Assembly: GCF_000315625.1 (NCBI RefSeq)
Contig: NW_005434559.1
Location: 80,276-144,275, forward strand
Length of the DNA stretch: 64,000 bases
Direction of reading: 5' to 3'
Source of the DNA: Guillardia theta CCMP2712
Lineage: Eukaryota > Protista > Cryptophyta
Part shown: piece after piece, positions 2,800 through 60,879 of the stretch
Position numbering within the stretch: position 1 is the stretch's first letter
Layout of the letters: every line of letters begins with the position of its first letter
The notes under the pieces: generated by a model
The model's input: the letters and a program-made list of their open reading frames with translations, nothing else
Told to the model about the DNA's origin: nothing
Database searches by the model: none
Position numbers and translations under genes: made by a program

Positions 2800-3221
2800 A
2801 GTTGAAAGGGAACTGCAGGAGAAGGGTAGCGGAGGCCAGCATCTCAGATCCGATGTAGGTGTTGTCTTGATTTTCAAGGAGGAGAAAAGTTTTGATTCTA
2901 CCTTTACCAAGTCCCATCTTACACTGAGCGTCCGATACTAGATACAGCACATGAATCGTATTTTCCTGGGCAATCCACCTCAACGACTTTTCCTTGCCTC
3001 TTCAAACATCCTAATGTGAATTTTCTCACCATGATCATGATCTGAATTCGCAATATTGTGAATTTCATTGATGAGGATGATTATCACCATAATTTTTTGG
3101 TTGTTACGCGAGAGGGGTCCGCCCAACTATGCAACATCAATGGGGATACTATCTGCTCATCCTCTTCCATCAATGATAGCCATGTTATCTGCTCAGATTT
3201 TTCTCTTTCAATCTCAGTAGG

Positions 3222-3397
3222 CCCTCCATCTCCTCCCACCCCTGTATCCCCTCTCTTCCTACTAACCCCGCTCTTCTCTCCATCTCCTCCCACCCCTGTA
3301 TCCCCTCTCTTCCTACTAACCCCGCTCTTCCCTCCATCTCCTCCCACCCTTGTATCCCCTCTCTTCCTACTAACCCCGCTCTTCCCTCCATCTCCTC
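3222..3397. repeat. 54-bp pyrimidine-rich minisatellite, about 3.3 copies
   Basis: Unit ccctccatctcctcccacccctgtatcccctctcttcctactaaccccgctctt starts at 3222, 3276 and 3330, with a partial copy at 3384. Confidence 0.95.
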
Positions 3398-3557
3398 TCC
3401 TCCTTCTATCGTGCACATCACACCTCCATCACACCATCTCAGTGTCAGGGCATCAGTGTCGCTCCATTGAACTCGCGTGTAGGAGACTTCGATCGTCTCA
3501 TCTATCGCACATACCATTGGGTATTATGCACACAAACTTTTGACTGCAAAACTTACC

Positions 3558-5770
3558 GCAACAATACCAAGAGTTGCGAGTTCGTCTGATGCCTTTAAAA
3601 AATAGTATTATATATTTAAACATTATTATTATTAGTGTACGAAGTGATCACAACAGGTACAGTGTTTGTTTACAGATGGCTAGAATCACACATTATATAG
3701 TGTATAGAATTTCTATATATTTGACTGAACTCTGTATGCTTATGATCAAATTAACACAGCACATGGTACTCCATTTTTTTAAAAATAATTTAATTGAGAC
3801 ATGGGACTTTTGACTGCCAATTCTGGGGCAACAATCTGAAGCAATGCGAATTTTTTTGATTTGAGACCAATCTAAACCGTTGCAATAATTTTATAAGTGG
3901 GTTGTTGATTCGCCTGTCAACCGGAGGGCAACAATCTGAAACGATGTGAAACCATGTGCTGCCCTGAGTTTTGCCTGTCAGAGCTATGGGGCAACAATCC
4001 CAATCGATGGGTTTTGAAGAGACCTGGGCAGGATCTGCCACGAAAAGGTCTACTTCCAGGGGTATGTTTGAAACACGCAATGGTTCGTATTGTTGCGTCA
4101 GGGCTCACAGTCACAACTCTCAACCACCAGACATGAAGGTGGTATTGGTGAGGATAAACAGACCCGCCTCGCGATATTTGATAAATACAGCATAAGGCAG
4201 CGAACTTTCATAGCAGATATGAGTTGCTCCTGTCAAAAGATGAAACTCACAACCATTGGGATTGTTGCTCAAAAATTTGGAGTCAAATGTCGCATGACTG
4301 CCTTTTCAGAGATGCAACGCTTCAGATTGTTGCGGGAAAGTTGAGAGTCAAAACTCTTGCCGGTGCACCCCCAATTCCACAAATCAAAACAAATCGCATC
4401 GCTCTGTATTGTTGCTTCAGACCATGCAGTCAAAAGTCAGATTACCTGTCAGAAACATGCAATTTTTCGTATTGTTGCCAGGCAATTTGCGATGTGACCA
4501 CTCGTTACACCCCGTGACCATGCTTTTCACCCCTTCGATTGATGACTCGTCGTCCCTCGTGACAGCCAAATTTGGCTCGTCGCTTCCCCCGATTCCTAAG
4601 CCCCGCAACAATACGAATCGCTCTTAGATAAGGAATAAAAGATGGAACGGTTCGTATTGTTGCTAGACTGTATGTTCCCAGGGGAAGAATCAAGACAACC
4701 CCGATTTGAGACGATGAATCGCCGGGTACATGTACTGCCAAGACCCCATCGTTTCGTATTGTTGCTAGACTCTAGTTCGTTTGGGGAGGGGGAACCCCCT
4801 ACACCCCCTGGATTTCCTTTCAGTATACCCGTACCCTGTCGACTCAGACCCTGTCGTTTGCTATTTTAGTCTGTGTGGGGAAAGGGACCCCATGGACCCC
4901 TCTAACATTCGAGTGATACACCCGTACTCTTTGTTCTCGGACCCCGTCGTTTGGTATTGTTGCTAGACTCTAGTTCCTGATAACCCTTGGGGAGGGGGAA
5001 CCCCCTACTCCCCTCTACTCCCCTGATTATATTGACCCGTACCCGTGCTCTTTGTTCTCGGACCCCGTCGTTTGGTATTGTTGCTAGACTCTATTGCTAG
5101 ACTCTAGTTCCTGGATGCATCCTTGTACCCCTCAATTGGTATGCAAGGACCCCGTCGTTTGGTATTGTTGCTAGACTCTAGTTCCTGGATGCATCCTTGT
5201 ACCCCTCAATTGGTATGCAAGGACCCCGTCGTTTGGTATTGTTGCTAGACTCTAGTTCCTGGATGCATCCTTGTACCCCTCAATTGGTATGCAAGGACCC
5301 CGTCGTTTGGTATTGTTGCTAGACTCTAGTTCCTGGATGCATCCTTGTACCCCTCAATTGGTATGCAAGGACCCCATCGTTTGGTATTGTTGCTAGACTC
5401 TAGTTCCTGGGGTACATTTTGTGGGTGTAAACCCCGTCGTTTGGTATTGTTGCTAGACCCCAGTTCCTGGCAACAGCTGATCATACCCCTCGAATTATAG
5501 ACCCTCTCTTTTCCAGCAATAGAGCGGGGAAACCACCCGTACCTTTTTGCACAACAAAACTGAGTCGATTCGCTTTGTTGCTGGACAAAAGTGGATACAA
5601 ACCATCGTGCAACTGAGGCGGGCTATCAAAACATGCATCGTTTCTCATTGTTGCTAGGCAAAACTCGGTACAGATATAGCACTCTCAACCACAACGGTTT
5701 GAATTGTTGCCAGGTAAAAGTTTTGACTGGCCAGCGACACGGGTGAAAAGACAACGCTTCAGATTGTTGC
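3558..5770. repeat. Interspersed array of about 20 copies of a ~16-bp motif (cgNttNNNATTGTTGC) with mostly unique spacers and an orientation switch
   Basis: GCAACAAT at 3558, 3828, 3928, 3991 and 4605. ATTGTTGC at 4089, 4261, 4326, 4408, 4471, 4656, 4758, 4956, 5077, 5164, 5238, 5312, 5386, 5446, 5647, 5703 and 5763. Confidence 0.9.
5095..5410 (+). repeat. Homogenised 74-bp tandem repeat (about 4.3 copies) inside the motif array
   Basis: Unit gaccccgtcgtttggtattgttgctagactctagttcctgg + atgcatccttgtacccctcaattggtatgcaag; cores exactly 74 bp apart at 5164, 5238, 5312 and 5386. Confidence 0.95.
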
Positions 5771-5879
5771 TAGGCAAAACTGGATACAAATGGGGTTGCT
5801 CGTATTTGAAAATGTTTGATGCCTTGAGTTATTGATCATTGATTTGAAATCTGAAGGATCCAAAAAAAAATCCGACAGA

Positions 5880-6475
5880 AGTAGCCGGGCCGCCGGCCGG
5901 GTCGAACCGTGAACGCCGGTCCGTCCGATCACTGAGTCGCCGTGGTGACGGTGGCCGCACCGGGCACCATGGCCACCGGAACTTCGGAACAAACAAACTG
6001 TCGGAACTTGGAATGGAAACCGTGACCGTACTGTAACAGTGTCGAGAGTCTGAGTGAACGCGTCGTCGGAGGCCGATCGGACTCGGAGAGCCGGCAGACT
6101 CTGAGAGCGCCGGCCCGGGGGGCCGGGGGCGCGGCCGGGCGTTACCGTCTCGGACCGGGCCCGGGCCCGGACTCCCCGACTCAGTCGGACTCTCCGACTC
6201 TGAGATCATCGGATGACATGCCAGGCATGCCCCCCCGGCGCCGCCGCGCCGCGCGGCGCGGCCGGCAGGCTAGCAGGAGTCGCTGAGAGTCACGGTCCGC
6301 CGGACGGTCCCGGGAACGGCGTCAAGTTCCGACAGCCCCTGAGTATCATCCACTGGGCCACCGTACCATATGGTACGGTCTCCGGCTGGCCCGGAATACC
6401 ATAGTACCCGGCCGGGCGCTGCCTGCGGCCCCCCGCGGCCGGCCGCGCTCTCAGTCACATCATAGTACCGTACCG
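5880..6475. other. CpG- and palindrome-rich GC island (recurrent class)
   Basis: Very high GC, dense in CCGG, GGCC, GTAC, GAGTC/GACTC and CTGAG words; overlapping ORFs are low-complexity Arg/Pro/Gly/Ala. Confidence 0.7.
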
Positions 6476-6994
6476 TTCACAATGAAAGTTTCGGCAGTAT
6501 CGCTCTCGCATGGGTCAAGTTGCCGTACTCGGGCCTCGCAGGAGCCTTGCGCTACAGTGCGTCCCGCTGTGCTTGTCGTGCATGCCGGGCCGGCCGGCCG
6601 TCGCTCAGCGGCTTGCGTGGTTCAAACGCCGTTGGAGTAGCGGTTGGCAAGTTTTCGGCAGTGCCTCCTCCGTTTCCTGGGCAGTGGTGTTTTTTCTTGA
6701 GGCAGATTTGTAGGCCCCCGTTTCTCCCGGTTGAAGTTTTCCTCCCTAATTGCTCCGGGTTTGCCTTTCCTTTTTCAGTCAATAAAGGACATATAAAGGG
6801 ACTTCATTCATGAAAAAAACAAGTTTGTGGCTTTCCCTCCCCCTCCTGTATCCTCCATCTTCATCGAAATGCCGCCAAGACTGAGGTTTGCGGGTGTCCT
6901 AAATATGCTTCATCCCTTCCTGTCCCACTCTCTATCTTCTTCCCTCCTCTGTTTGTTGCTAGGGTTGCATGAATATTCAACATTACGCCGCATA

Positions 6995-8630
6995 ATGCCA
7001 CGAAAGAGAACAACAGGTTGCGAGTTCACCAGAGATCAGACAGTAAAATGTTGTCTCAAGAAACATGTCAAGGAGAAACCATTGATACCTGTCATTGACA
7101 AAGGGGTCGATCACATCGCCAAGATCTCGTATCGTGGTAGCCTCATATTCAACAAATTTCTGATATGTTGCTTTGAAAGGGACTCTGAACAGCCTGAAAG
7201 AGATCGATTATCAGAGTTCTTCTCTCAATTGAATGCAATCAAGTCAAACAAACACGATTTGTTTATTTGTTGCTGTTTTTTGTTAGGTATAAAGGTTGAT
7301 CATGGTAGAAAAACAACAAATTTCAACATTTTGAGTGAGTTCTGGGAATCAAAGAAGGACTTGTACACCTTGGAACTGAGCCGTATTAACGGTGCCGGAC
7401 AAGCATTGACGTACATCACCAACCAATACGCAACGAATTTCACGACGCATATGAATTTCATTGTCAATGCACGTCACATCAAGCACATTACGCTCTGGAG
7501 GGAAACAAACAATGTTTTCTCAGACAAAAAGAAAAACGAAATATTTGGCATCGGATCGAAGATCAATGGCTGGCATTTAAAGCGAAAACAGTAATGAAAG
7601 AAGAACAGTTTCTTAGTGTGTTCACAATAAAAAATACAACAAGTCAGGGAAGCGAGTTTCTTTGTGTGATCGTTTTATATGGATTGATCTAGGGCGAGCC
7701 GTTTTGATATGCGGGATTGAGGTTGTTGATTCACAAGATACGAGTCAGATCAAGAGATATCGATTCACTCGAGAAAAAATCTACTTTGAGTCGCATAAAT
7801 ACCCCCGCATATTTCATTGCGCCAGAGGAAGATTGAACAATGGCAGAAATCCGTCAGAGATATCGAAGAAATGAGGACGCACTTTTCGTTGAAGACATGT
7901 CTCCTCGATTCTTCTGAAGAGTCACTTACCGCGTTTTTGGGTATGTTTGATGGCTTATACATCCATGAAAGTTACAGCAAAACGAAATGGGGCATCATGA
8001 GAATGGATAACTACATTCATAAACGGAACGCTGTCGATCGTTTCTTTGAAACCATGGAGGGAAGAAAGAAAGGTCTATCGTAATCGTCATCTGTGTCGTC
8101 ATCGTCATCTGCGAAGGCTTCCATCGTGAAGGCAACCCTTCGCCTGTTTGCGCTCAAAGCATCCTCGCAATATCCGCAGTGGATATGAGGAAGGTTGCAG
8201 AGCTTGGCATGTTGATGCAGAGTGTCTTCCCGAAACATGTCCTTTTGTTCGTGGACGAGTCTGGAGACAAGATCCCCTGCCAGATGGGGTCGTTCTTGAG
8301 CATTTGCATCAATTCCGACTGTCAGCATTAACATTCCAAACATGCTCGTCGTACAAGTCGGGATTGACGCACATACTCAAGAATTACGGGGTTACAATGA
8401 GCATGGAGGCGGTGAAAACATTGAGCAGTGACTTCAGAGGATTGATGCGAACATTGAATCTTTTCGGGAATGTACCCAACACGAATAAATGACAACAGGC
8501 AAGGTTCCCTTGTCATGCCATTTGTACTCAGTATTCGCCAAGATTAAACTTGATGTCCAGATCGTCAAGTTTAATTTTGGCGAATACTGAACTCGGGACT
8601 GAAAATCTCTCACAGAGCATGAAGTGAGGA
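6995..8630 (+). pseudogene. Fanzor1 (eukaryotic TnpB-derived RNA-guided endonuclease), frameshifted and internally deleted
   Basis: N-terminal TVKCCLKKHV...IDKGVDHIAKISYRGSLIFNKFL matches the Fanzor1 N-terminal pattern. RuvC-I-like FIWIDLGRAVLI (about 7675-7710) is followed by YRFTREKIYFES. Bridge-helix-like KWGIMRMDNYIHKRNAVDRFF (about 7985-8047) and C-terminal DFRGLMR (about 8430-8450). Split across at least four ORF pieces by stops and frameshifts; intronless and AT-richer than host genes. Confidence 0.72.
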
Positions 8631-8800
8631 ACAAACGTGATTGTTTTGGTTTTTTCTTGAAGTCCTAAGGTAACCACACTGGGACTCCTCTTGAACCACA
8701 ATTCAAGAGCAAATGCTTCTTAGCTGGTCAAGCAGCAGGAACTTCAGCTTGCAGCATTGTAAGTGACGCATGGTGATGCATGAGTGATGCATCTTGCGCT
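8630..8800 (+). ncRNA. Candidate omegaRNA scaffold / element right end of the Fanzor locus
   Basis: Lies just 3' of the Fanzor remnant. Stem-loops ctcttgaa-ccacaa-ttcaagag (8688-8709) and gatgcat-gagtg-atgcatc (8775-8793, extendable by cgca/tgcg). Positional inference only. Confidence 0.3.
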
Positions 8801-8972
8801 ATGTAACTAATGCATGTTCATTGGCCTGCAAGTATACTTCACGGCAATCTTCTCAGGGAGTGCAAGCTATCACAGTCTTCTCAACTCCTGCTTGTACACT
8901 GCTGCAGCTCTGCCGCCCCGTGTCGGACCTTCGCCTCTCCTCCAAGCAACTGCTTCCTGTGATGAGAGGAGT

Positions 8973-11087
8973 TCACAAGATATCAATGCTCGCTACATCT
9001 GCCTGCTTCCCCTCCTGCCCCTTCTTCCATCCGTACTCCTTTAGCGCTCCGCAGTGTTTGATTGGGTCGATCCGAAAATCCTGAAGCCTTTCTGGCGGGA
9101 CGATGAACACTACTTTGACTTTCCATCCCTTGGTTGGAATGTTGAGCTTCTTGAGAGCTTTTGCCAAGGGAGAGAGCTTGAATGAGTGCGATGATGAAAC
9201 TGTCACCATCACAAACTCGACCAACTTCGCACGCACGTCCACAATGATAGCATCAAAGCCTGGTTGAAACACGCTAATTGGTTTCAAGCATGTTCTATCT
9301 TTAAGAAGATCATTTATGACTCCCATCGTGTCCAACAGAAACACTGGACATCCTTCCCATCGTGACTCGTGCTTGCGATAGGTCAGGGTCAGCCCTTGCT
9401 TCACCTTCTTGAAGAATAAAAGCTCGAAAAGGTAGCCCCGCAAGCTCGGATTGCACTCCCCATCCAACAGCCTCTTCAAAACGTCCACTTTCGCTTCGTC
9501 CGCAAGCCTCGTGGCGACGTACTTGCTGACAGGCATCCAGCACGCTTGTCCGTCATGCATGTACCTCGCAGTCAAGTGATTTACAGCATGCGGCGAAGAG
9601 TCGCCGACGTTACCCTGGAACAGAAGTTCTAGGTTTCGACATGATGAAATAGCCACTTCCAGCCTCTCAACCACCACCGCTGCTGTCTTCTCAAACATGT
9701 ACCGACACGAGCCACCAGCCAGGTAATACTTCGACATAATCTGCTCTTCTTTCGTACCATTCCGCTTCTGTATCCTCATACCATTGTGCACTGCACTGTC
9801 ATGCAACGATAGCATGGGCTTAACTCTCATGTAAAAATCGTCACACTTCACTGCATCCAGGTACTCACCAGCCGTCCATGATACAACGGTGTGCCGCCTC
9901 AGATTTACGACGTTTTCGTGCTTATCCCGTACCTTTCCCCCACATGACATCGACGTCACAACTACTACCCGCCGATTCTCTCTATCACCTAGGAGCCATC
10001 TCGTACACGCTCGATAGCAGTGGACATGATGTGATTCGTGCCTCAAGTAGCCGTCGATGATGACAAGACGCTTCTCGCTGTCCGGCCATTCTTGTAGTAT
10101 TTCATTGGTCCATTTCAGCGTGCATTCCACTGGTATCGTGCACGACCTTCTCTTACTGCCTACGATCTGAATGCACTCAATCAAGTCAACTGAATCGAGC
10201 TGGAAGAAAGTTATGCTCCACTTCTTCATGCAAAGCGATAAACAGAAGGCTAGCGTCGTCGTCGTCTTCCCAGTCCCCGGGGGACCTTGAATCCAGCCCA
10301 ATGCCCGATTGTCCACTACCTTGTCTTTCAAGAAACGCTGCTGCACGTGGAAGGATTCCCGGCAGTAAAGGAGTATCTCTCCGTCTCCTTGCAAGTATGA
10401 TGCATCGAGACGAAAGTACTTCTTGCCATGGCAAAAGCCTATCCGGTCCAGTCCTGCCTCTGACTCGATCCAAATAACCCTAGGCTTACTAGATACCCCG
10501 CTCTGTCTCTGGAGATGAAGCCTTTCTTTGTTAAGCTCCTTCAACCTATCTCCAAGCTGTATCTCTCGCTCTCCAAGGTGTTTCTCTCTGTCTCCAAGCT
10601 GCTTCACTCTGTCTCCAAGCTGCTTCACTCTGTCTCCAAGCCTTTCATATACCTTGACATGGACCGCCTTCATCATTGAGTCCTGTTCGTGATCGATATT
10701 TTTCAGCACCTCCTTCATCTCTCGTTGTACCTTCTTGATCTCTCGTTGTACGCCTGGAGCTACCTGTTTGATATCTCGTTGTACCTCCTTCATCTTTTGT
10801 TGTACTTCTTTGATCTCTTGTTGTACTTCCTCTAGCTGTTGCTCGACCTGATCGGTCCTAGTCTTTGATCCTCCATATCCTCCTCTCGTGCGCTTGACCA
10901 GACCATCAGTCCAGCCCAAGAGAGCACCAGCTGAATATTTTGCCGTGCTGGGACATGAAGAGACCCACTTCGAGCTGGAAGACACGGAGGAGCAAGGCGA
11001 TGGGCTAGGAGAAAGTAGCCTCCCGACGCTCATCGTCGTCCGCGCGAGCGCCAGCAACAGCACGGCAGCACGCGCCGCATTTGGCAT
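8973..11087 (-). CDS. Crinkler/RHS-type (CR) protein: signal peptide, coiled coil, P-loop NTPase and C-terminal restriction-endonuclease-fold domain; 704 aa, intronless
   Basis: Hydrophobic leader MPNAARAAVLLLALA; heptad repeats (LGDRVKQ)n; Walker A GPPGTGKT; Walker B LVIIDG; YYLAGGSCRYMF motif typical of CR-NTPases; C-terminal RGYLFELLFF...QPGFDAIIVD...VEFVMVTVSSSH PD-(D/E)xK-like pattern. Confidence 0.8.
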   Translation of the reverse strand: MPNAARAAVLLLALARTTMSVGRLLSPSPSPCSSVSSSSKWVSSCPSTAKYSAGALLGWTDGLVKRTRGGYGGSKTRTDQVEQQLEEVQQEIKEVQQKMKEVQRDIKQVAPGVQREIKKVQREMKEVLKNIDHEQDSMMKAVHVKVYERLGDRVKQLGDRVKQLGDREKHLGEREIQLGDRLKELNKERLHLQRQSGVSSKPRVIWIESEAGLDRIGFCHGKKYFRLDASYLQGDGEILLYCRESFHVQQRFLKDKVVDNRALGWIQGPPGTGKTTTTLAFCLSLCMKKWSITFFQLDSVDLIECIQIVGSKRRSCTIPVECTLKWTNEILQEWPDSEKRLVIIDGYLRHESHHVHCYRACTRWLLGDRENRRVVVVTSMSCGGKVRDKHENVVNLRRHTVVSWTAGEYLDAVKCDDFYMRVKPMLSLHDSAVHNGMRIQKRNGTKEEQIMSKYYLAGGSCRYMFEKTAAVVVERLEVAISSCRNLELLFQGNVGDSSPHAVNHLTARYMHDGQACWMPVSKYVATRLADEAKVDVLKRLLDGECNPSLRGYLFELLFFKKVKQGLTLTYRKHESRWEGCPVFLLDTMGVINDLLKDRTCLKPISVFQPGFDAIIVDVRAKLVEFVMVTVSSSHSFKLSPLAKALKKLNIPTKGWKVKVVFIVPPERLQDFRIDPIKHCGALKEYGWKKGQEGKQADVASIDIL

Positions 11088-11105: not shown

Positions 11106-11792
11106 TCAAGAAAACGTAAACGGAATGAGAGATGAACATAGGAAGGGTGTGTGAAGTGTATGAAATTTTCATGGTGTTTCAAAGCCGGCGGAATGCTCCT
11201 AACTAGTAGTAACTGCTCCTATGCTGATCTGGCCGGGCGGCATTACTTGCTCCCCTTTCGCGGGACCTACGGAGGTTAGAGAGTCCTATATGATTGAGTA
11301 AATATTTACTCAAGTTTTCCTAATTGGGACTCAGCGAAAATGCTGCTCTGGCATCACCATGGCATGTAGATAACAAGATGCTCAGTCATTGCATCACGTC
11401 ATGTACTGGAACTTGGAAGGTGACATTTGTTTGGATGATATCTGTAATATACTTATGATACTTGTGTCTTCAATACAAGATCGCGAGCTCAGTGTAAAGC
11501 CTGAATTCCCTACTTTGCAAGTAACTTCAACACTCAGTGATGATACATTATGTACTTTCAATACGGTCACCGTAGCATACAACAGCCTGACATACATTCT
11601 TTATGGCCATGATTGATCTGATCAGTGAAAAGGTTCGAAAGGGGAGCAAGTAATGCCGCCCGGCCAGATCAGCATAGGAGCAGTTAGGAGCATTCCGCCG
11701 GCTCGAGATTTTGCTTTTTAACACCATGAAAATTTCATTCATTTCACACACCCTTCCTATGCTAATCTCTCATTCCGTTTACGTTTTCTTGA
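11106..11792. repeat. Inverted repeat with ~155-bp arms (11106-11260 and 11636-11792) around a ~375-bp spacer; foldback/MITE-like
   Basis: tcaagaaaacgtaaacggaatgaga...gcattacttgctcccctttcg is mirrored by cgaaaggggagcaagtaatgc...tctcattccgtttacgttttcttga, with a few substitutions and indels. Confidence 0.92.
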
Positions 11793-60510: not shown

Positions 60511-60879
60511 TCGGGAGCTCTCCTTCAGACTTTGCGGTGAGGCGGGCTGGAATATTGCTATGATCCCTGTACGAACTCTGGTCATATACAGGTCATAGGA
60601 GATGATCATATATGCCTAGTATGACTTTAACTAAGACACAGAGGTCATAAGACAGTTGCCTATGACATATCATATCCTCAGGTCATATCATGGTGCTACA
60701 ATCCTAAGAAACTGTTTGGGTCTTATTGTGGTTATACACATACTAGGACCCCCTAAGACAAAACTGAGGGTTGACATGGCGCCACTCGGAATCGGAGGAG
60801 CAACAATGCGAAGCGTTGCGATTGAACGACTAATGGATATGGTAACCGAGCAACCGTCATGGAAACGACTTGTAACCGT

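Follow-up and report, generated by a model that had tools for sequence, protein, structure and literature searches.

The window, a 64-kb stretch of the Guillardia theta CCMP2712 genome, contains near its left end an array of a short oriented motif, a GC-rich island and a decayed Fanzor/TnpB-type transposon copy, and a lone copy of the motif lies near its right end (Table 1). The array sits in a low-GC island of about 9 kb with an intron-free gene; the island's 704-aa gene belongs to a eukaryotic Crinkler/RHS-type family and is not viral, and the rest of the window consists of host housekeeping genes. A sequence-only reading of this DNA had treated positions 3558-8800 as a repeat-spacer array directly upstream of a Fanzor1 gene. 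The array was recovered as far as 5770, and the part up to 8800 covers the Fanzor remnant, not the array.

Table 1. Features of the array locus, in window coordinates
Feature	Position	Strand	Basis and remarks
Whole array, 23 copies of CAWCGNTTSRNATTGTTGC, spacers mostly unrelated	3558..5770	.	motif and PWM counts
Left arm, 4 motif copies (3558, 3828, 3928, 3991)	3558..4009	-	motif matches, inverted pairs
Block nearly empty in ChIP-seq	3591..5757	.	two 2026 runs, about 0.2-0.3x compared to about 6-14x in both flanks
Right arm, 18 copies on the plus strand and one (4605) on the minus strand	4078..5770	+	motif and PWM matches
74-bp tandem repeat, 4.3 copies, 99% identical	5094..5410	+	young duplication within the array
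GC-rich (68%) island, normal ChIP depth	5880..6500	.	directly right of the array; context, outside the array
Decayed Fanzor/TnpB-type transposon copy	7028..8590	+	translated similarity, multi-copy 3′ segment, hairpin; neighbor of the array, not part of it
Lone full-length motif copy	60800..60818	-	about 90 bp from another GC-rich island

The sequence-only reading had counted about 20 copies of a motif of about 16 bp. The array itself stands, with 22 exact copies of ATTGTTGC in 3558-5770 and 23 in the whole window (shuffles: mean 1.03, maximum 4), and the unit length had to be revised: ATTGTTGC makes up the 3′ end of a longer, oriented unit, CAWCGNTTSRNATTGTTGC, which measures about 19 bp and is flanked on its 5′ side by A-rich sequence. 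The site has a bipartite layout in which CGNTT, 3 nt and ATTGTTGC follow one another, with CAW and the A-rich flank upstream. A PWM built from the motif and applied with a threshold score of at least 14 gave 23 matches in 3558-5770 plus the lone copy at 60800, compared to 0.2 in shuffled windows. Positions outside the search pattern were conserved as well (C-11 0.79, A-10 0.73, C-8 0.90, G-7 0.87, T-5 0.94 and T-4 0.92), and at the G. theta clusters the conserved stretch covers 19-27 bp. A literature search with the motif string returned primer matches only. Several familiar sites were considered and set aside: Myb (YAACGG), RFX X-box and SOX-type half-site readings led to no claim because the AAC core is unconserved; the likeness to the Pol III B-box (GGTTCGA) was dropped because A is the rarest base of the motif at the position of the invariant A58; and the snRNA PSE/USE (SNAPc site) reading was dropped because the regions about 55-65 bp upstream of the G. 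theta U6 and U2 genes bear CCCGCCATCGGAG instead of the array motif.

Five of the 23 copies lie on the minus strand, namely the four of the left arm and the one at 4605; the others are plus-strand copies. Only about 90 bp separates the two abutting arms, and the units 3805-3863 and 4380-4438 are 78% reverse-complementary, which indicates that the mirror arrangement of the arms is real. Every left-arm copy is followed by a GTCAAAAGT-like box, and the left arm also contains an AT-rich, motif-free gap of 270 bp (3580-3825); the final units of the right arm carry TAGGCAAAA..GATACAAA after the motif, as does the array on scaffold C51. Spacing is irregular, at about 50-270 bp, and four of the spacers are tandem copies without a difference between them. 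Both the identical central spacers and the 41-bp repeat with a 33-bp spacer described earlier were traced to the 74-bp tandem repeat. Apart from one 54-bp unit, which matches C51:399985-400039, the 2.35-kb array region and its flanks are single-copy in the genome.

A search of the 87-Mb genome with CGNTTNNNATTGTTGC (13 specified bases) gave 125 matches, compared to 5 for the reversed control. Arrays were found at at least 10 other loci, on scaffolds C1, C3 (three, at 298, 366 and 376 kb), C16, C18, C42 (two, at 513 and 527 kb), C51, C67 (at 230-234, 290 and 375 kb), C82, C100 and C115; those on C1 and C82 and at 376 kb on C3 are known from match lists only. This amounts to about 10-14 array regions in 87 Mb, each array-bearing scaffold representing one region. 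The arrays are internal to scaffolds, the largest comprise up to 26 sites over 2 kb, and lone copies also occur. Over all G. theta arrays, same-strand copies stand 46-128 bp apart, most often 57-65 bp. Neither the spacers nor the flanks are related from locus to locus, and the second box that follows the motif differs likewise, being TATAAATAGG on C42, CTTCTTAGCTCCT on C18 and C67, and GATACAAA on C51, C115 and C3. A tblastx comparison of the flanks for a neighboring gene family common to the G. theta arrays found no coding homology, transposase or other, and the larger neighboring ORFs encode unrelated host domains in Pfam (channel, PAS, JmjN, WD40 and phosphatase). The arrays have no consistent position relative to gene starts, and those on C16 and C18 lie between convergent open frames. 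Many independent loci, with copies in either orientation, thus keep the motif but not what lies between and beside its copies, which is the pattern of a homotypic cluster of binding sites.

In the two ChIP-seq runs, whose likely source is a study of histone marks in strain CCMP2712, read depth dropped 20-50-fold exactly over the window array, the one array checked. Residual reads remain there, indicating that the array DNA is present, and an independent DNA run contained 94% of the sampled words of 3000-8900. Since the reads were mapped to this stretch alone, multi-mapping cannot make the gap; should one of the two runs be an input control, lost or unsequenceable DNA, and not missing histones, would explain it. 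The gap includes the motif-free AT-rich stretch of the left arm, which points to a property of the domain as a whole more than to site-by-site exclusion.

We favor, with moderate confidence, the interpretation that the array is a homotypic cluster of putative binding sites for one DNA-binding protein that keeps the block histone-free. A multi-zinc-finger or dimeric factor would fit the length and asymmetry of the site. Growth of the array was probably through local duplications, tandem as well as inverted, of units of 55-110 bp, after which the spacers drifted and the site was retained. With a site every 90 bp or so, less than a nucleosome footprint, the bound factor would keep all 2.2 kb free of histone H3, and the outcome would be an intergenic block, permanently open or of boundary type, with a putative regulatory or boundary role.

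The last of the three options raised by the sequence-only reading, an unrelated chromosomal element such as an origin or centromere, is the one that comes closest to this evidence. In a rival reading, the arrays would be a non-nucleosomal or variant-histone domain, for example a small centromere with CENH3 in place of H3, and the motif a CENP-B-box-type recruitment site. The gap in H3-type ChIP, which is complete, sharply bounded, 2.2 kb long and inclusive of the motif-free stretch, is consistent with such a domain, as are the lack of visible transcription and the number of array regions, one per array-bearing scaffold. However, C3, C42 and C67 each have more than one separate array in their region, contrary to a simple point centromere, lone motif copies exist, and metagenomic contigs each bear many short promoter-side arrays of the motif, which does not fit a centromere. 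We consider this reading unlikely.

These contigs, which come from many waters, are gene-dense and ORFan-rich and carry the same motif, unrequired positions included, in arrays of 2-13 copies. Their arrays lie mostly upstream of gene starts, facing about 21 starts compared to about 8 gene ends, and at orthologous DUF2828 loci 1-4 copies are kept in four out of five cases, 50-350 bp upstream of the ATG and in gene orientation. The contig genes include those for ankyrin, MORN, LRR, BTB and TPR proteins, and their start codons have a eukaryote-type context with C at -1 of the ATG; a bacterial origin was rejected on this ground and for want of a Shine-Dalgarno signal. A search for contigs encoding the window ORFs or the L074 ORFs found none. 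The shorter arrays just upstream of genes on these compact genomes of eukaryote or large-virus type suggest that the general role of the motif is probably transcriptional or architectural.

The arrays might also be relics or domesticated regulatory repeats of once-integrated large DNA viruses, the contigs being such viruses, which we likewise regard as improbable. The density and mostly ORFan nature of the contig genes, with their repeat-protein families, would agree with this origin, and so would the nearest clusters of the DUF2828/DUF7788 protein, which are largely Nucleocytoviricota, and the low-GC island with its intron-free gene around the window array. However, no protein homology was found between the G. 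theta array flanks and the motif-bearing contigs, and the eukaryotic family of the 704-aa gene and the host housekeeping genes of the remaining window do not point to a virus. Furthermore, no motif arrays were found in IMG/VR viral contigs, giant-virus bins included, the IMG/VR relatives of the DUF2828 protein are distant only (26-36% identity), and over a dead relic one would expect histones with repressive marks and not an absence of histones. Polinton-like viruses, of which only 3 complete and 2 partial ones are reported from G. theta (PMC12220804), are too few to be the origin of the arrays.

It is very unlikely that the units are themselves tiny RNA genes, of Pol III type for instance, with the motif as their promoter or as a conserved RNA end. 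Heavy transcription would then account for the missing histones, as clusters of Pol III genes lack nucleosomes, and RNAs of this kind would escape RNA-seq of the poly(A) type; on C42, moreover, TATAAATAGG stands 7 nt after every motif with a 58-bp period, and the spacers are enriched in A-runs, which read as T-runs on the opposite strand (43% vs 23%). Nonetheless, there is no enrichment of T-runs in the orientation of the motif, less than half of the units contain an A-run, the units fold no better than shuffles (mean z -0.9 and -0.1), Rfam and tRNA searches of the units gave no match, and the upstream half of the motif varies without compensating changes. The upstream element of the G. theta snRNA genes is a different sequence, as described above, and almost no RNA-seq reads fell over the array (6% of one poly(A)-type run read).

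The subterminal regions of DNA transposons also typically contain a short motif in direct and inverted copies, and the second option of the sequence-only reading, that the copies are subterminal transposase-binding sites (CACTA or hAT style), was considered for this reason. It is highly improbable, since there is no multi-copy element, the array region having its one 54-bp match elsewhere in the genome, the abutting arms enclose no element, and the flanks share no coding homology and adjoin ORFs with unrelated host domains.

The remaining option was a guide or ncRNA array linked to the Fanzor. The nuclease copy is dead, as had been noted from the sequence, its translated similarity (7082-8117) running through frames 1, 2 and 1 with an internal deletion, followed by a multi-copy 3′ segment (8323-8546) and a hairpin (8528-8590). 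The array ends at 5770 and the remnant begins at about 7028-7082, a distance of about 1.26 kb that agrees with the earlier estimate of about 1.2 kb. A Fanzor element uses one omegaRNA, encoded inside the transposon at the 3′ end of the nuclease gene or overlapping that end, and CRISPR repeats are uniform in orientation and spacing. The array shares with both a conserved repeat alternating with variable sequence beside a TnpB-family gene; unlike a Fanzor/OMEGA guide, it lies 5′ of the remnant, outside the homology to the other copies of the element, and the multi-copy transposon family of the remnant has no sequence in common with the array. Unlike CRISPR, its copies are of mixed orientation and irregularly spaced. 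In addition, none of the at least 10 other array loci lies near a Fanzor/TnpB gene, all being away from PF07282 matches, and the PWM had no match at 15 PF07282-bearing loci and 5 remnant-homologous loci. The earlier reading, which itself ranked this option as least supported, had named arrays independent of Fanzor loci and Fanzor copies lacking arrays as evidence against it, and both were found. The idea that the array supplies the neighboring Fanzor nuclease with guide RNAs, suggested by proximity and a superficial repeat-spacer look and at odds with these data, with the broken nuclease and with the lack of visible RNA structure or transcription (in 6% of one poly(A)-type run), can thus be given practically no credence, and the Fanzor copy beside the array is an unrelated transposon insertion.

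These findings remove the tempting but wrong idea of a CRISPR-like guide array for a eukaryotic Fanzor and replace it with a testable element, a long conserved motif in kilobase arrays at about 12 places of a cryptophyte genome. To our knowledge, almost nothing is known of cis-regulatory or chromosome-architecture elements in cryptophytes. Candidate functions of the arrays are those of boundary, tethering or centromere-type elements; the arrays could also serve the engineering of G. theta, and a 27-mer probe would permit direct purification of the binding factor. More speculatively, and as a tentative proposal of rather low probability, histone-free domains may be held by a lineage-specific factor in a centromere-like, tethering or boundary role, with uncultured aquatic large DNA viruses or compact protists carrying the same docking site in front of their genes; if true, this would be a cis-code common to host and virus, undescribed so far.

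Among known systems, the SPE2 arrays of Plasmodium, which are bound by PfSIP2 and are subtelomeric and heterochromatic, resemble the G. theta arrays in their bipartite motif of about 16-19 bp, mainly tandem arrangement, restriction to few chromosomal regions of a protist and special chromatin, whereas the G. theta arrays lie inside scaffolds and, at the one array checked, histone ChIP signal is missing. EBV oriP combines a family of repeats with a dyad-symmetry element, and the likeness lies in about 20 direct copies of a near-palindromic site of about 20 bp with a few copies in the opposite orientation; the coccolithovirus EhV-86 has a promoter-side repeat family, comparable to the related short arrays upstream of many genes on the virus-like contigs. 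In contrast to both, the G. theta arrays lie in a host chromosome among host genes. The Drosophila gypsy insulator, with 12 Su(Hw) sites, and the IR boundary elements of S. pombe, which contain B-box/TFIIIC clusters, are likewise non-coding, with a long oriented protein-binding motif repeated many times at close intervals between spacers that are not conserved; they are poor in nucleosomes, and their effect depends on occupancy and not on a transcript. The G. theta motif resembles neither of theirs, and its arrays are larger, with up to 26 sites in 2 kb, and partly mirror-symmetric.

The octamer ATTGTTGC occurs 23 times in the 64-kb window, and 22 of these occurrences lie within 3558-5770 compared to approximately one in shuffled sequences, which confirms the sequence-only reading of a repeated motif in this region. 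When the sequence was read and all copies were aligned, a longer oriented motif emerged, CAWCGNTTSRNATTGTTGC, of which the octamer forms the 3′ end and which is preceded by an A-rich stretch. Motif positions that had not been used for finding the copies carry 0.9-1.6 bits each, whereas spacer positions carry 0-0.4 bits, and a position-weight matrix built from the motif recovered 23 copies in the array and a single additional copy at 60800, compared to 0.2 in shuffled windows. Five copies, namely the four at the left end and one internal, lie on the minus strand. The mirror arrangement of the units is real, since units of the two sides show 71-78% reverse complementarity over stretches of 40-59 nt. 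The part that had been described as best preserved is a 74-bp tandem repeat (4.3 copies, 99% identity), a recent local duplication.

Coordinates of features in the window and elsewhere in G. theta (C, contigs of the assembly; L, snRNA gene loci)
Feature	Location	Details
CT-rich tandem repeat	3222-3397	54 bp, 3.3 copies, just left of array
Motif array	3558-5770	
Fanzor-type remnant	~7028-8590	
Protein-level alignment of remnant	7082-8117	
3′ segment of remnant	8323-8546	most repeated part, at least 10 copies at 79-88% identity; ChIP depth doubles
Hairpin	8528-8590	26 bp, near-perfect, ends 3′ segment
Open frame	8973-11087 (-)	704 aa, intact
Palindrome	11106-11792	centre ~375 bp; three adjoining arm blocks (80 nt 93%, 22 nt 100%, 51 nt 100% complementary); adjoins start of 704-aa gene
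Alternating array	C3:376287-377406	divergent motif pairs 47-57 bp apart, every ~140-150 bp (match list); differs from one-orientation arrays on C51, C42 and C18
Satellite repeats	C101:163428-163795, C252:63146-63441	72 bp; ATTGTTGC by chance, without rest of motif
U6 gene	upstream element at L034:1430-1500	

In the G. theta assembly (87 Mb, 669 contigs), the paired-motif pattern gave 44 matches compared to four in the control, with arrays besides that in the window on contigs C3, C16, C18, C42 (two places), C51 and C67. A search with CGNTTNNNATTGTTGC, which has 13 specified bases, gave 125 matches compared to five for the reversed control, and added arrays on C1, C3 (at 366k and at 376-377k), C67 (at 290k), C82 and C100, as well as approximately 30 lone copies. 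Array positions include C1:466-467.4k, C3:298.6-299.6k and 376.2-377.4k, C16:198k, C18:304k, C42:513k, C51:398-400k, C67:230-232k and C82:377.4-378.1k. The C51 array contains 26 copies over 1.9 kb in a single orientation, and the C67 array switches orientation midway, like the window array. The motif is followed by TATAAATAGG in the C42 arrays, which have a 58-bp period, by CTTCTTAGCTCCT on C18 and C67, and by GATACAAA or its complement on C51, C3 and the window contig (C115). The sole other genome match of the 2.35-kb array region was one 54-bp unit common to C51. No coding similarity was found between the flanks of different arrays, and their neighbouring genes are unrelated to each other. 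A literature search by motif string found no published description of the motif.

Of the options raised earlier for the array, the one regarded as least supported was a guide or ncRNA source linked to the neighbouring Fanzor gene. Positions 6800-8800 have partial DNA copies on many contigs, at 71-91% identity, and the remnant aligns colinearly at the protein level with intact open frames of 594-644 aa bearing PF07282, the TnpB zinc-ribbon domain (summed E 1e-22 to 1e-28). This alignment changes frame (1>2>1) and contains an internal deletion, and the segment is thus a decayed copy of a Fanzor-type transposon, in agreement with the earlier view that this nuclease copy is dead. The region 8323-8590 is probably the right end or guide-RNA region of the Fanzor-type element, or a derived miniature element. 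We found no matrix hits at 15 PF07282 loci and five remnant-homologous loci (3 kb each), and none of the listed genome motif matches was near such loci; the Fanzor element therefore does not include the array, and the guide option was rejected, these being outcomes that had been named beforehand as refuting it. Motif clusters did not co-locate with Fanzor copies, the other arrays being situated away from Fanzor-type loci.

We scanned public metagenome contigs for ATTGTTGC and CGNTTNNNATTGTTGC separated by 35-65 nt, which yielded at least 120 loci. Clusters of at least two matrix hits numbered at least approximately 50 and, among the matches listed, reached 13 copies, with periods of 53-85 bp; the GC content of their contigs is 28-62%. 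At positions that the search did not require, the metagenomic arrays agree with G. theta (A-16 0.64, C-13 0.72, C-11 0.67, A-10 0.64, C-3 0.62, G-2 0.65), whereas these positions are near-uniform in single-hit loci. The IMG/VR viral contigs, a negative control set, gave 27 pattern matches, none with two matrix hits. Genes are densely packed on the array-bearing contigs (for example, Ga0222717_10000100, Ga0233432_10000003 and Ga0334989_0000032), and their open frames are long. Of 40 frames scanned, 25 had no Pfam match, the remaining matches being to ankyrin, LRR, TPR, MORN, NHL-BTB, ephrin-receptor-like, a fucosyltransferase and DUF2828. These contigs lack Shine-Dalgarno signals, 60% of their start codons have C at -1, and one gene is apparently split by an approximately 110-nt gap or frame change. 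From these properties together, the contigs are of eukaryote type, from either large DNA viruses or compact protists.

With related contigs collapsed, the metagenomic arrays face approximately 21 gene starts vs. approximately 8 gene ends. In four of five orthologous contigs the DUF2828 gene has one to four motif copies 50-350 bp upstream of its ATG, in the orientation of the gene and at a 64-66-bp period where multiple, with the ATTGTGGC core variant in two of the copy-bearing contigs. The behaviour of the motif in these metagenomic genomes is that of an upstream cis-element. The nearest clusters of the DUF2828/DUF7788 protein are mostly from giant viruses and plants, and its closest named relative is from G. 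theta (47-48% identity). Four ORFan-rich metagenomic contigs (L122, L210, L212 and L213) share a conserved divergent pair, encoding a TPR protein and the DUF2828/DUF7788 (TROVE/vWA-like) protein, with the array in the shared upstream region; a related contig has a neighbouring called gene of 8,840 residues. Another contig, L118 (Ga0222716_10009483, 7.4 kb), carries a single 2,204-aa ephrin-receptor-like/PAN gene with same-orientation motif arrays on both sides that extend to both contig ends, and could represent a single unit within a tandem array of genes, or else an element that is circular or terminally repetitive.

Raw reads of two G. theta ChIP-seq runs from 2026 were placed on positions 3000-8900 of the window alone. 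Depth was approximately 6-14x (summed per bin) at 3000-3393 and 5955-8900 and approximately 22x over the multi-copy segment 8319-8515, while its mean across 3591-5757 was approximately 0.2x and 0.3x in the two runs, and the edges of this gap match the first and last motif copies. Multi-mapping cannot create the gap given this placement, nor does GC content explain it, since depth is normal over the Fanzor remnant, which is AT-richer. The array DNA does exist in the organism, because a few ChIP reads remain within the gap and 94% of sampled words of 3000-8900 are present in a 2021 DNA run. The ChIP runs are most likely from a multi-species histone-mark study that used sonicated, cross-linked CCMP2712 chromatin and antibodies to H3 marks and H3 (bioRxiv 10.1101/2025.03.17.643675). 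On the targets that we infer for these runs, we read the gap to mean that (marked) histone H3 is absent throughout the array.

The simplest account is that the motif is a candidate site of one DNA-binding protein, and that local multiplication of this site would have given rise to the arrays. An oriented site of 19-27 bp is conserved while the spacers have diverged, both across many unrelated loci and in other genomes, which points to selection acting on the site. Furthermore, the candidate sites are spaced more closely than the size of a nucleosome, which, along with the ChIP gap, suggests that they may be occupied and exclude histones. The window array is thus a putative homotypic cluster of protein-binding sites, unusual in its size, symmetry and chromatin signature. 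In G. theta, the arrays may serve as enhancers, as boundaries beside GC-rich islands, or in some more unusual role; that they constitute a centromere-like domain is improbable.

We also regard a viral relic as an unlikely origin of the arrays. Otherwise, the window consists of ordinary host sequence, with genes for SART-1, EF3, cyclic-nucleotide-gated channels and an aminomethyltransferase-domain protein. The 704-aa open frame, which is in the same low-GC island as the array, encodes a P-loop as well as a coiled coil at the N terminus. The protein-atlas clusters nearest to it (score 0.97, TM 0.58/0.73) consist of Crinkler/RHS-type proteins from fungi, oomycetes and kinetoplastids, and it belongs to this eukaryotic P-loop family. 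Given the host genes and the eukaryotic affiliation of the 704-aa gene, a large viral insertion in the window is unlikely.

The units are very unlikely to be small Pol III-type genes, since they folded no better than shuffles, the array had no Rfam or tRNA matches, T-runs were not enriched in the motif orientation, and RNA reads were few (six on the whole 5.9 kb in the 6% of one raw RNA-seq run that was read). The contigs of a probable RNA run end at 3519 and restart at 6522. The upstream motif half varies (CAACG, CATCG, CGTCG, CAGCG), and the invariant half shows no compensating change. An snRNA-type promoter element was likewise rejected as the identity of the motif, because the G. theta U6 gene and three U2 genes (L035, L036 and L037) carry CCCGCCATCGGAG at approximately -60 instead. 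This shared upstream element, CCCGCCATCGGAG/CCCGCCATCGAGG, is approximately 60-70 bp upstream of position 1501 in the U2 loci, and the U6 gene has a TATA-like GATATACAA at approximately -30 as well. The U6/U2 element of G. theta resembles the upstream sequence element of plant snRNA genes.
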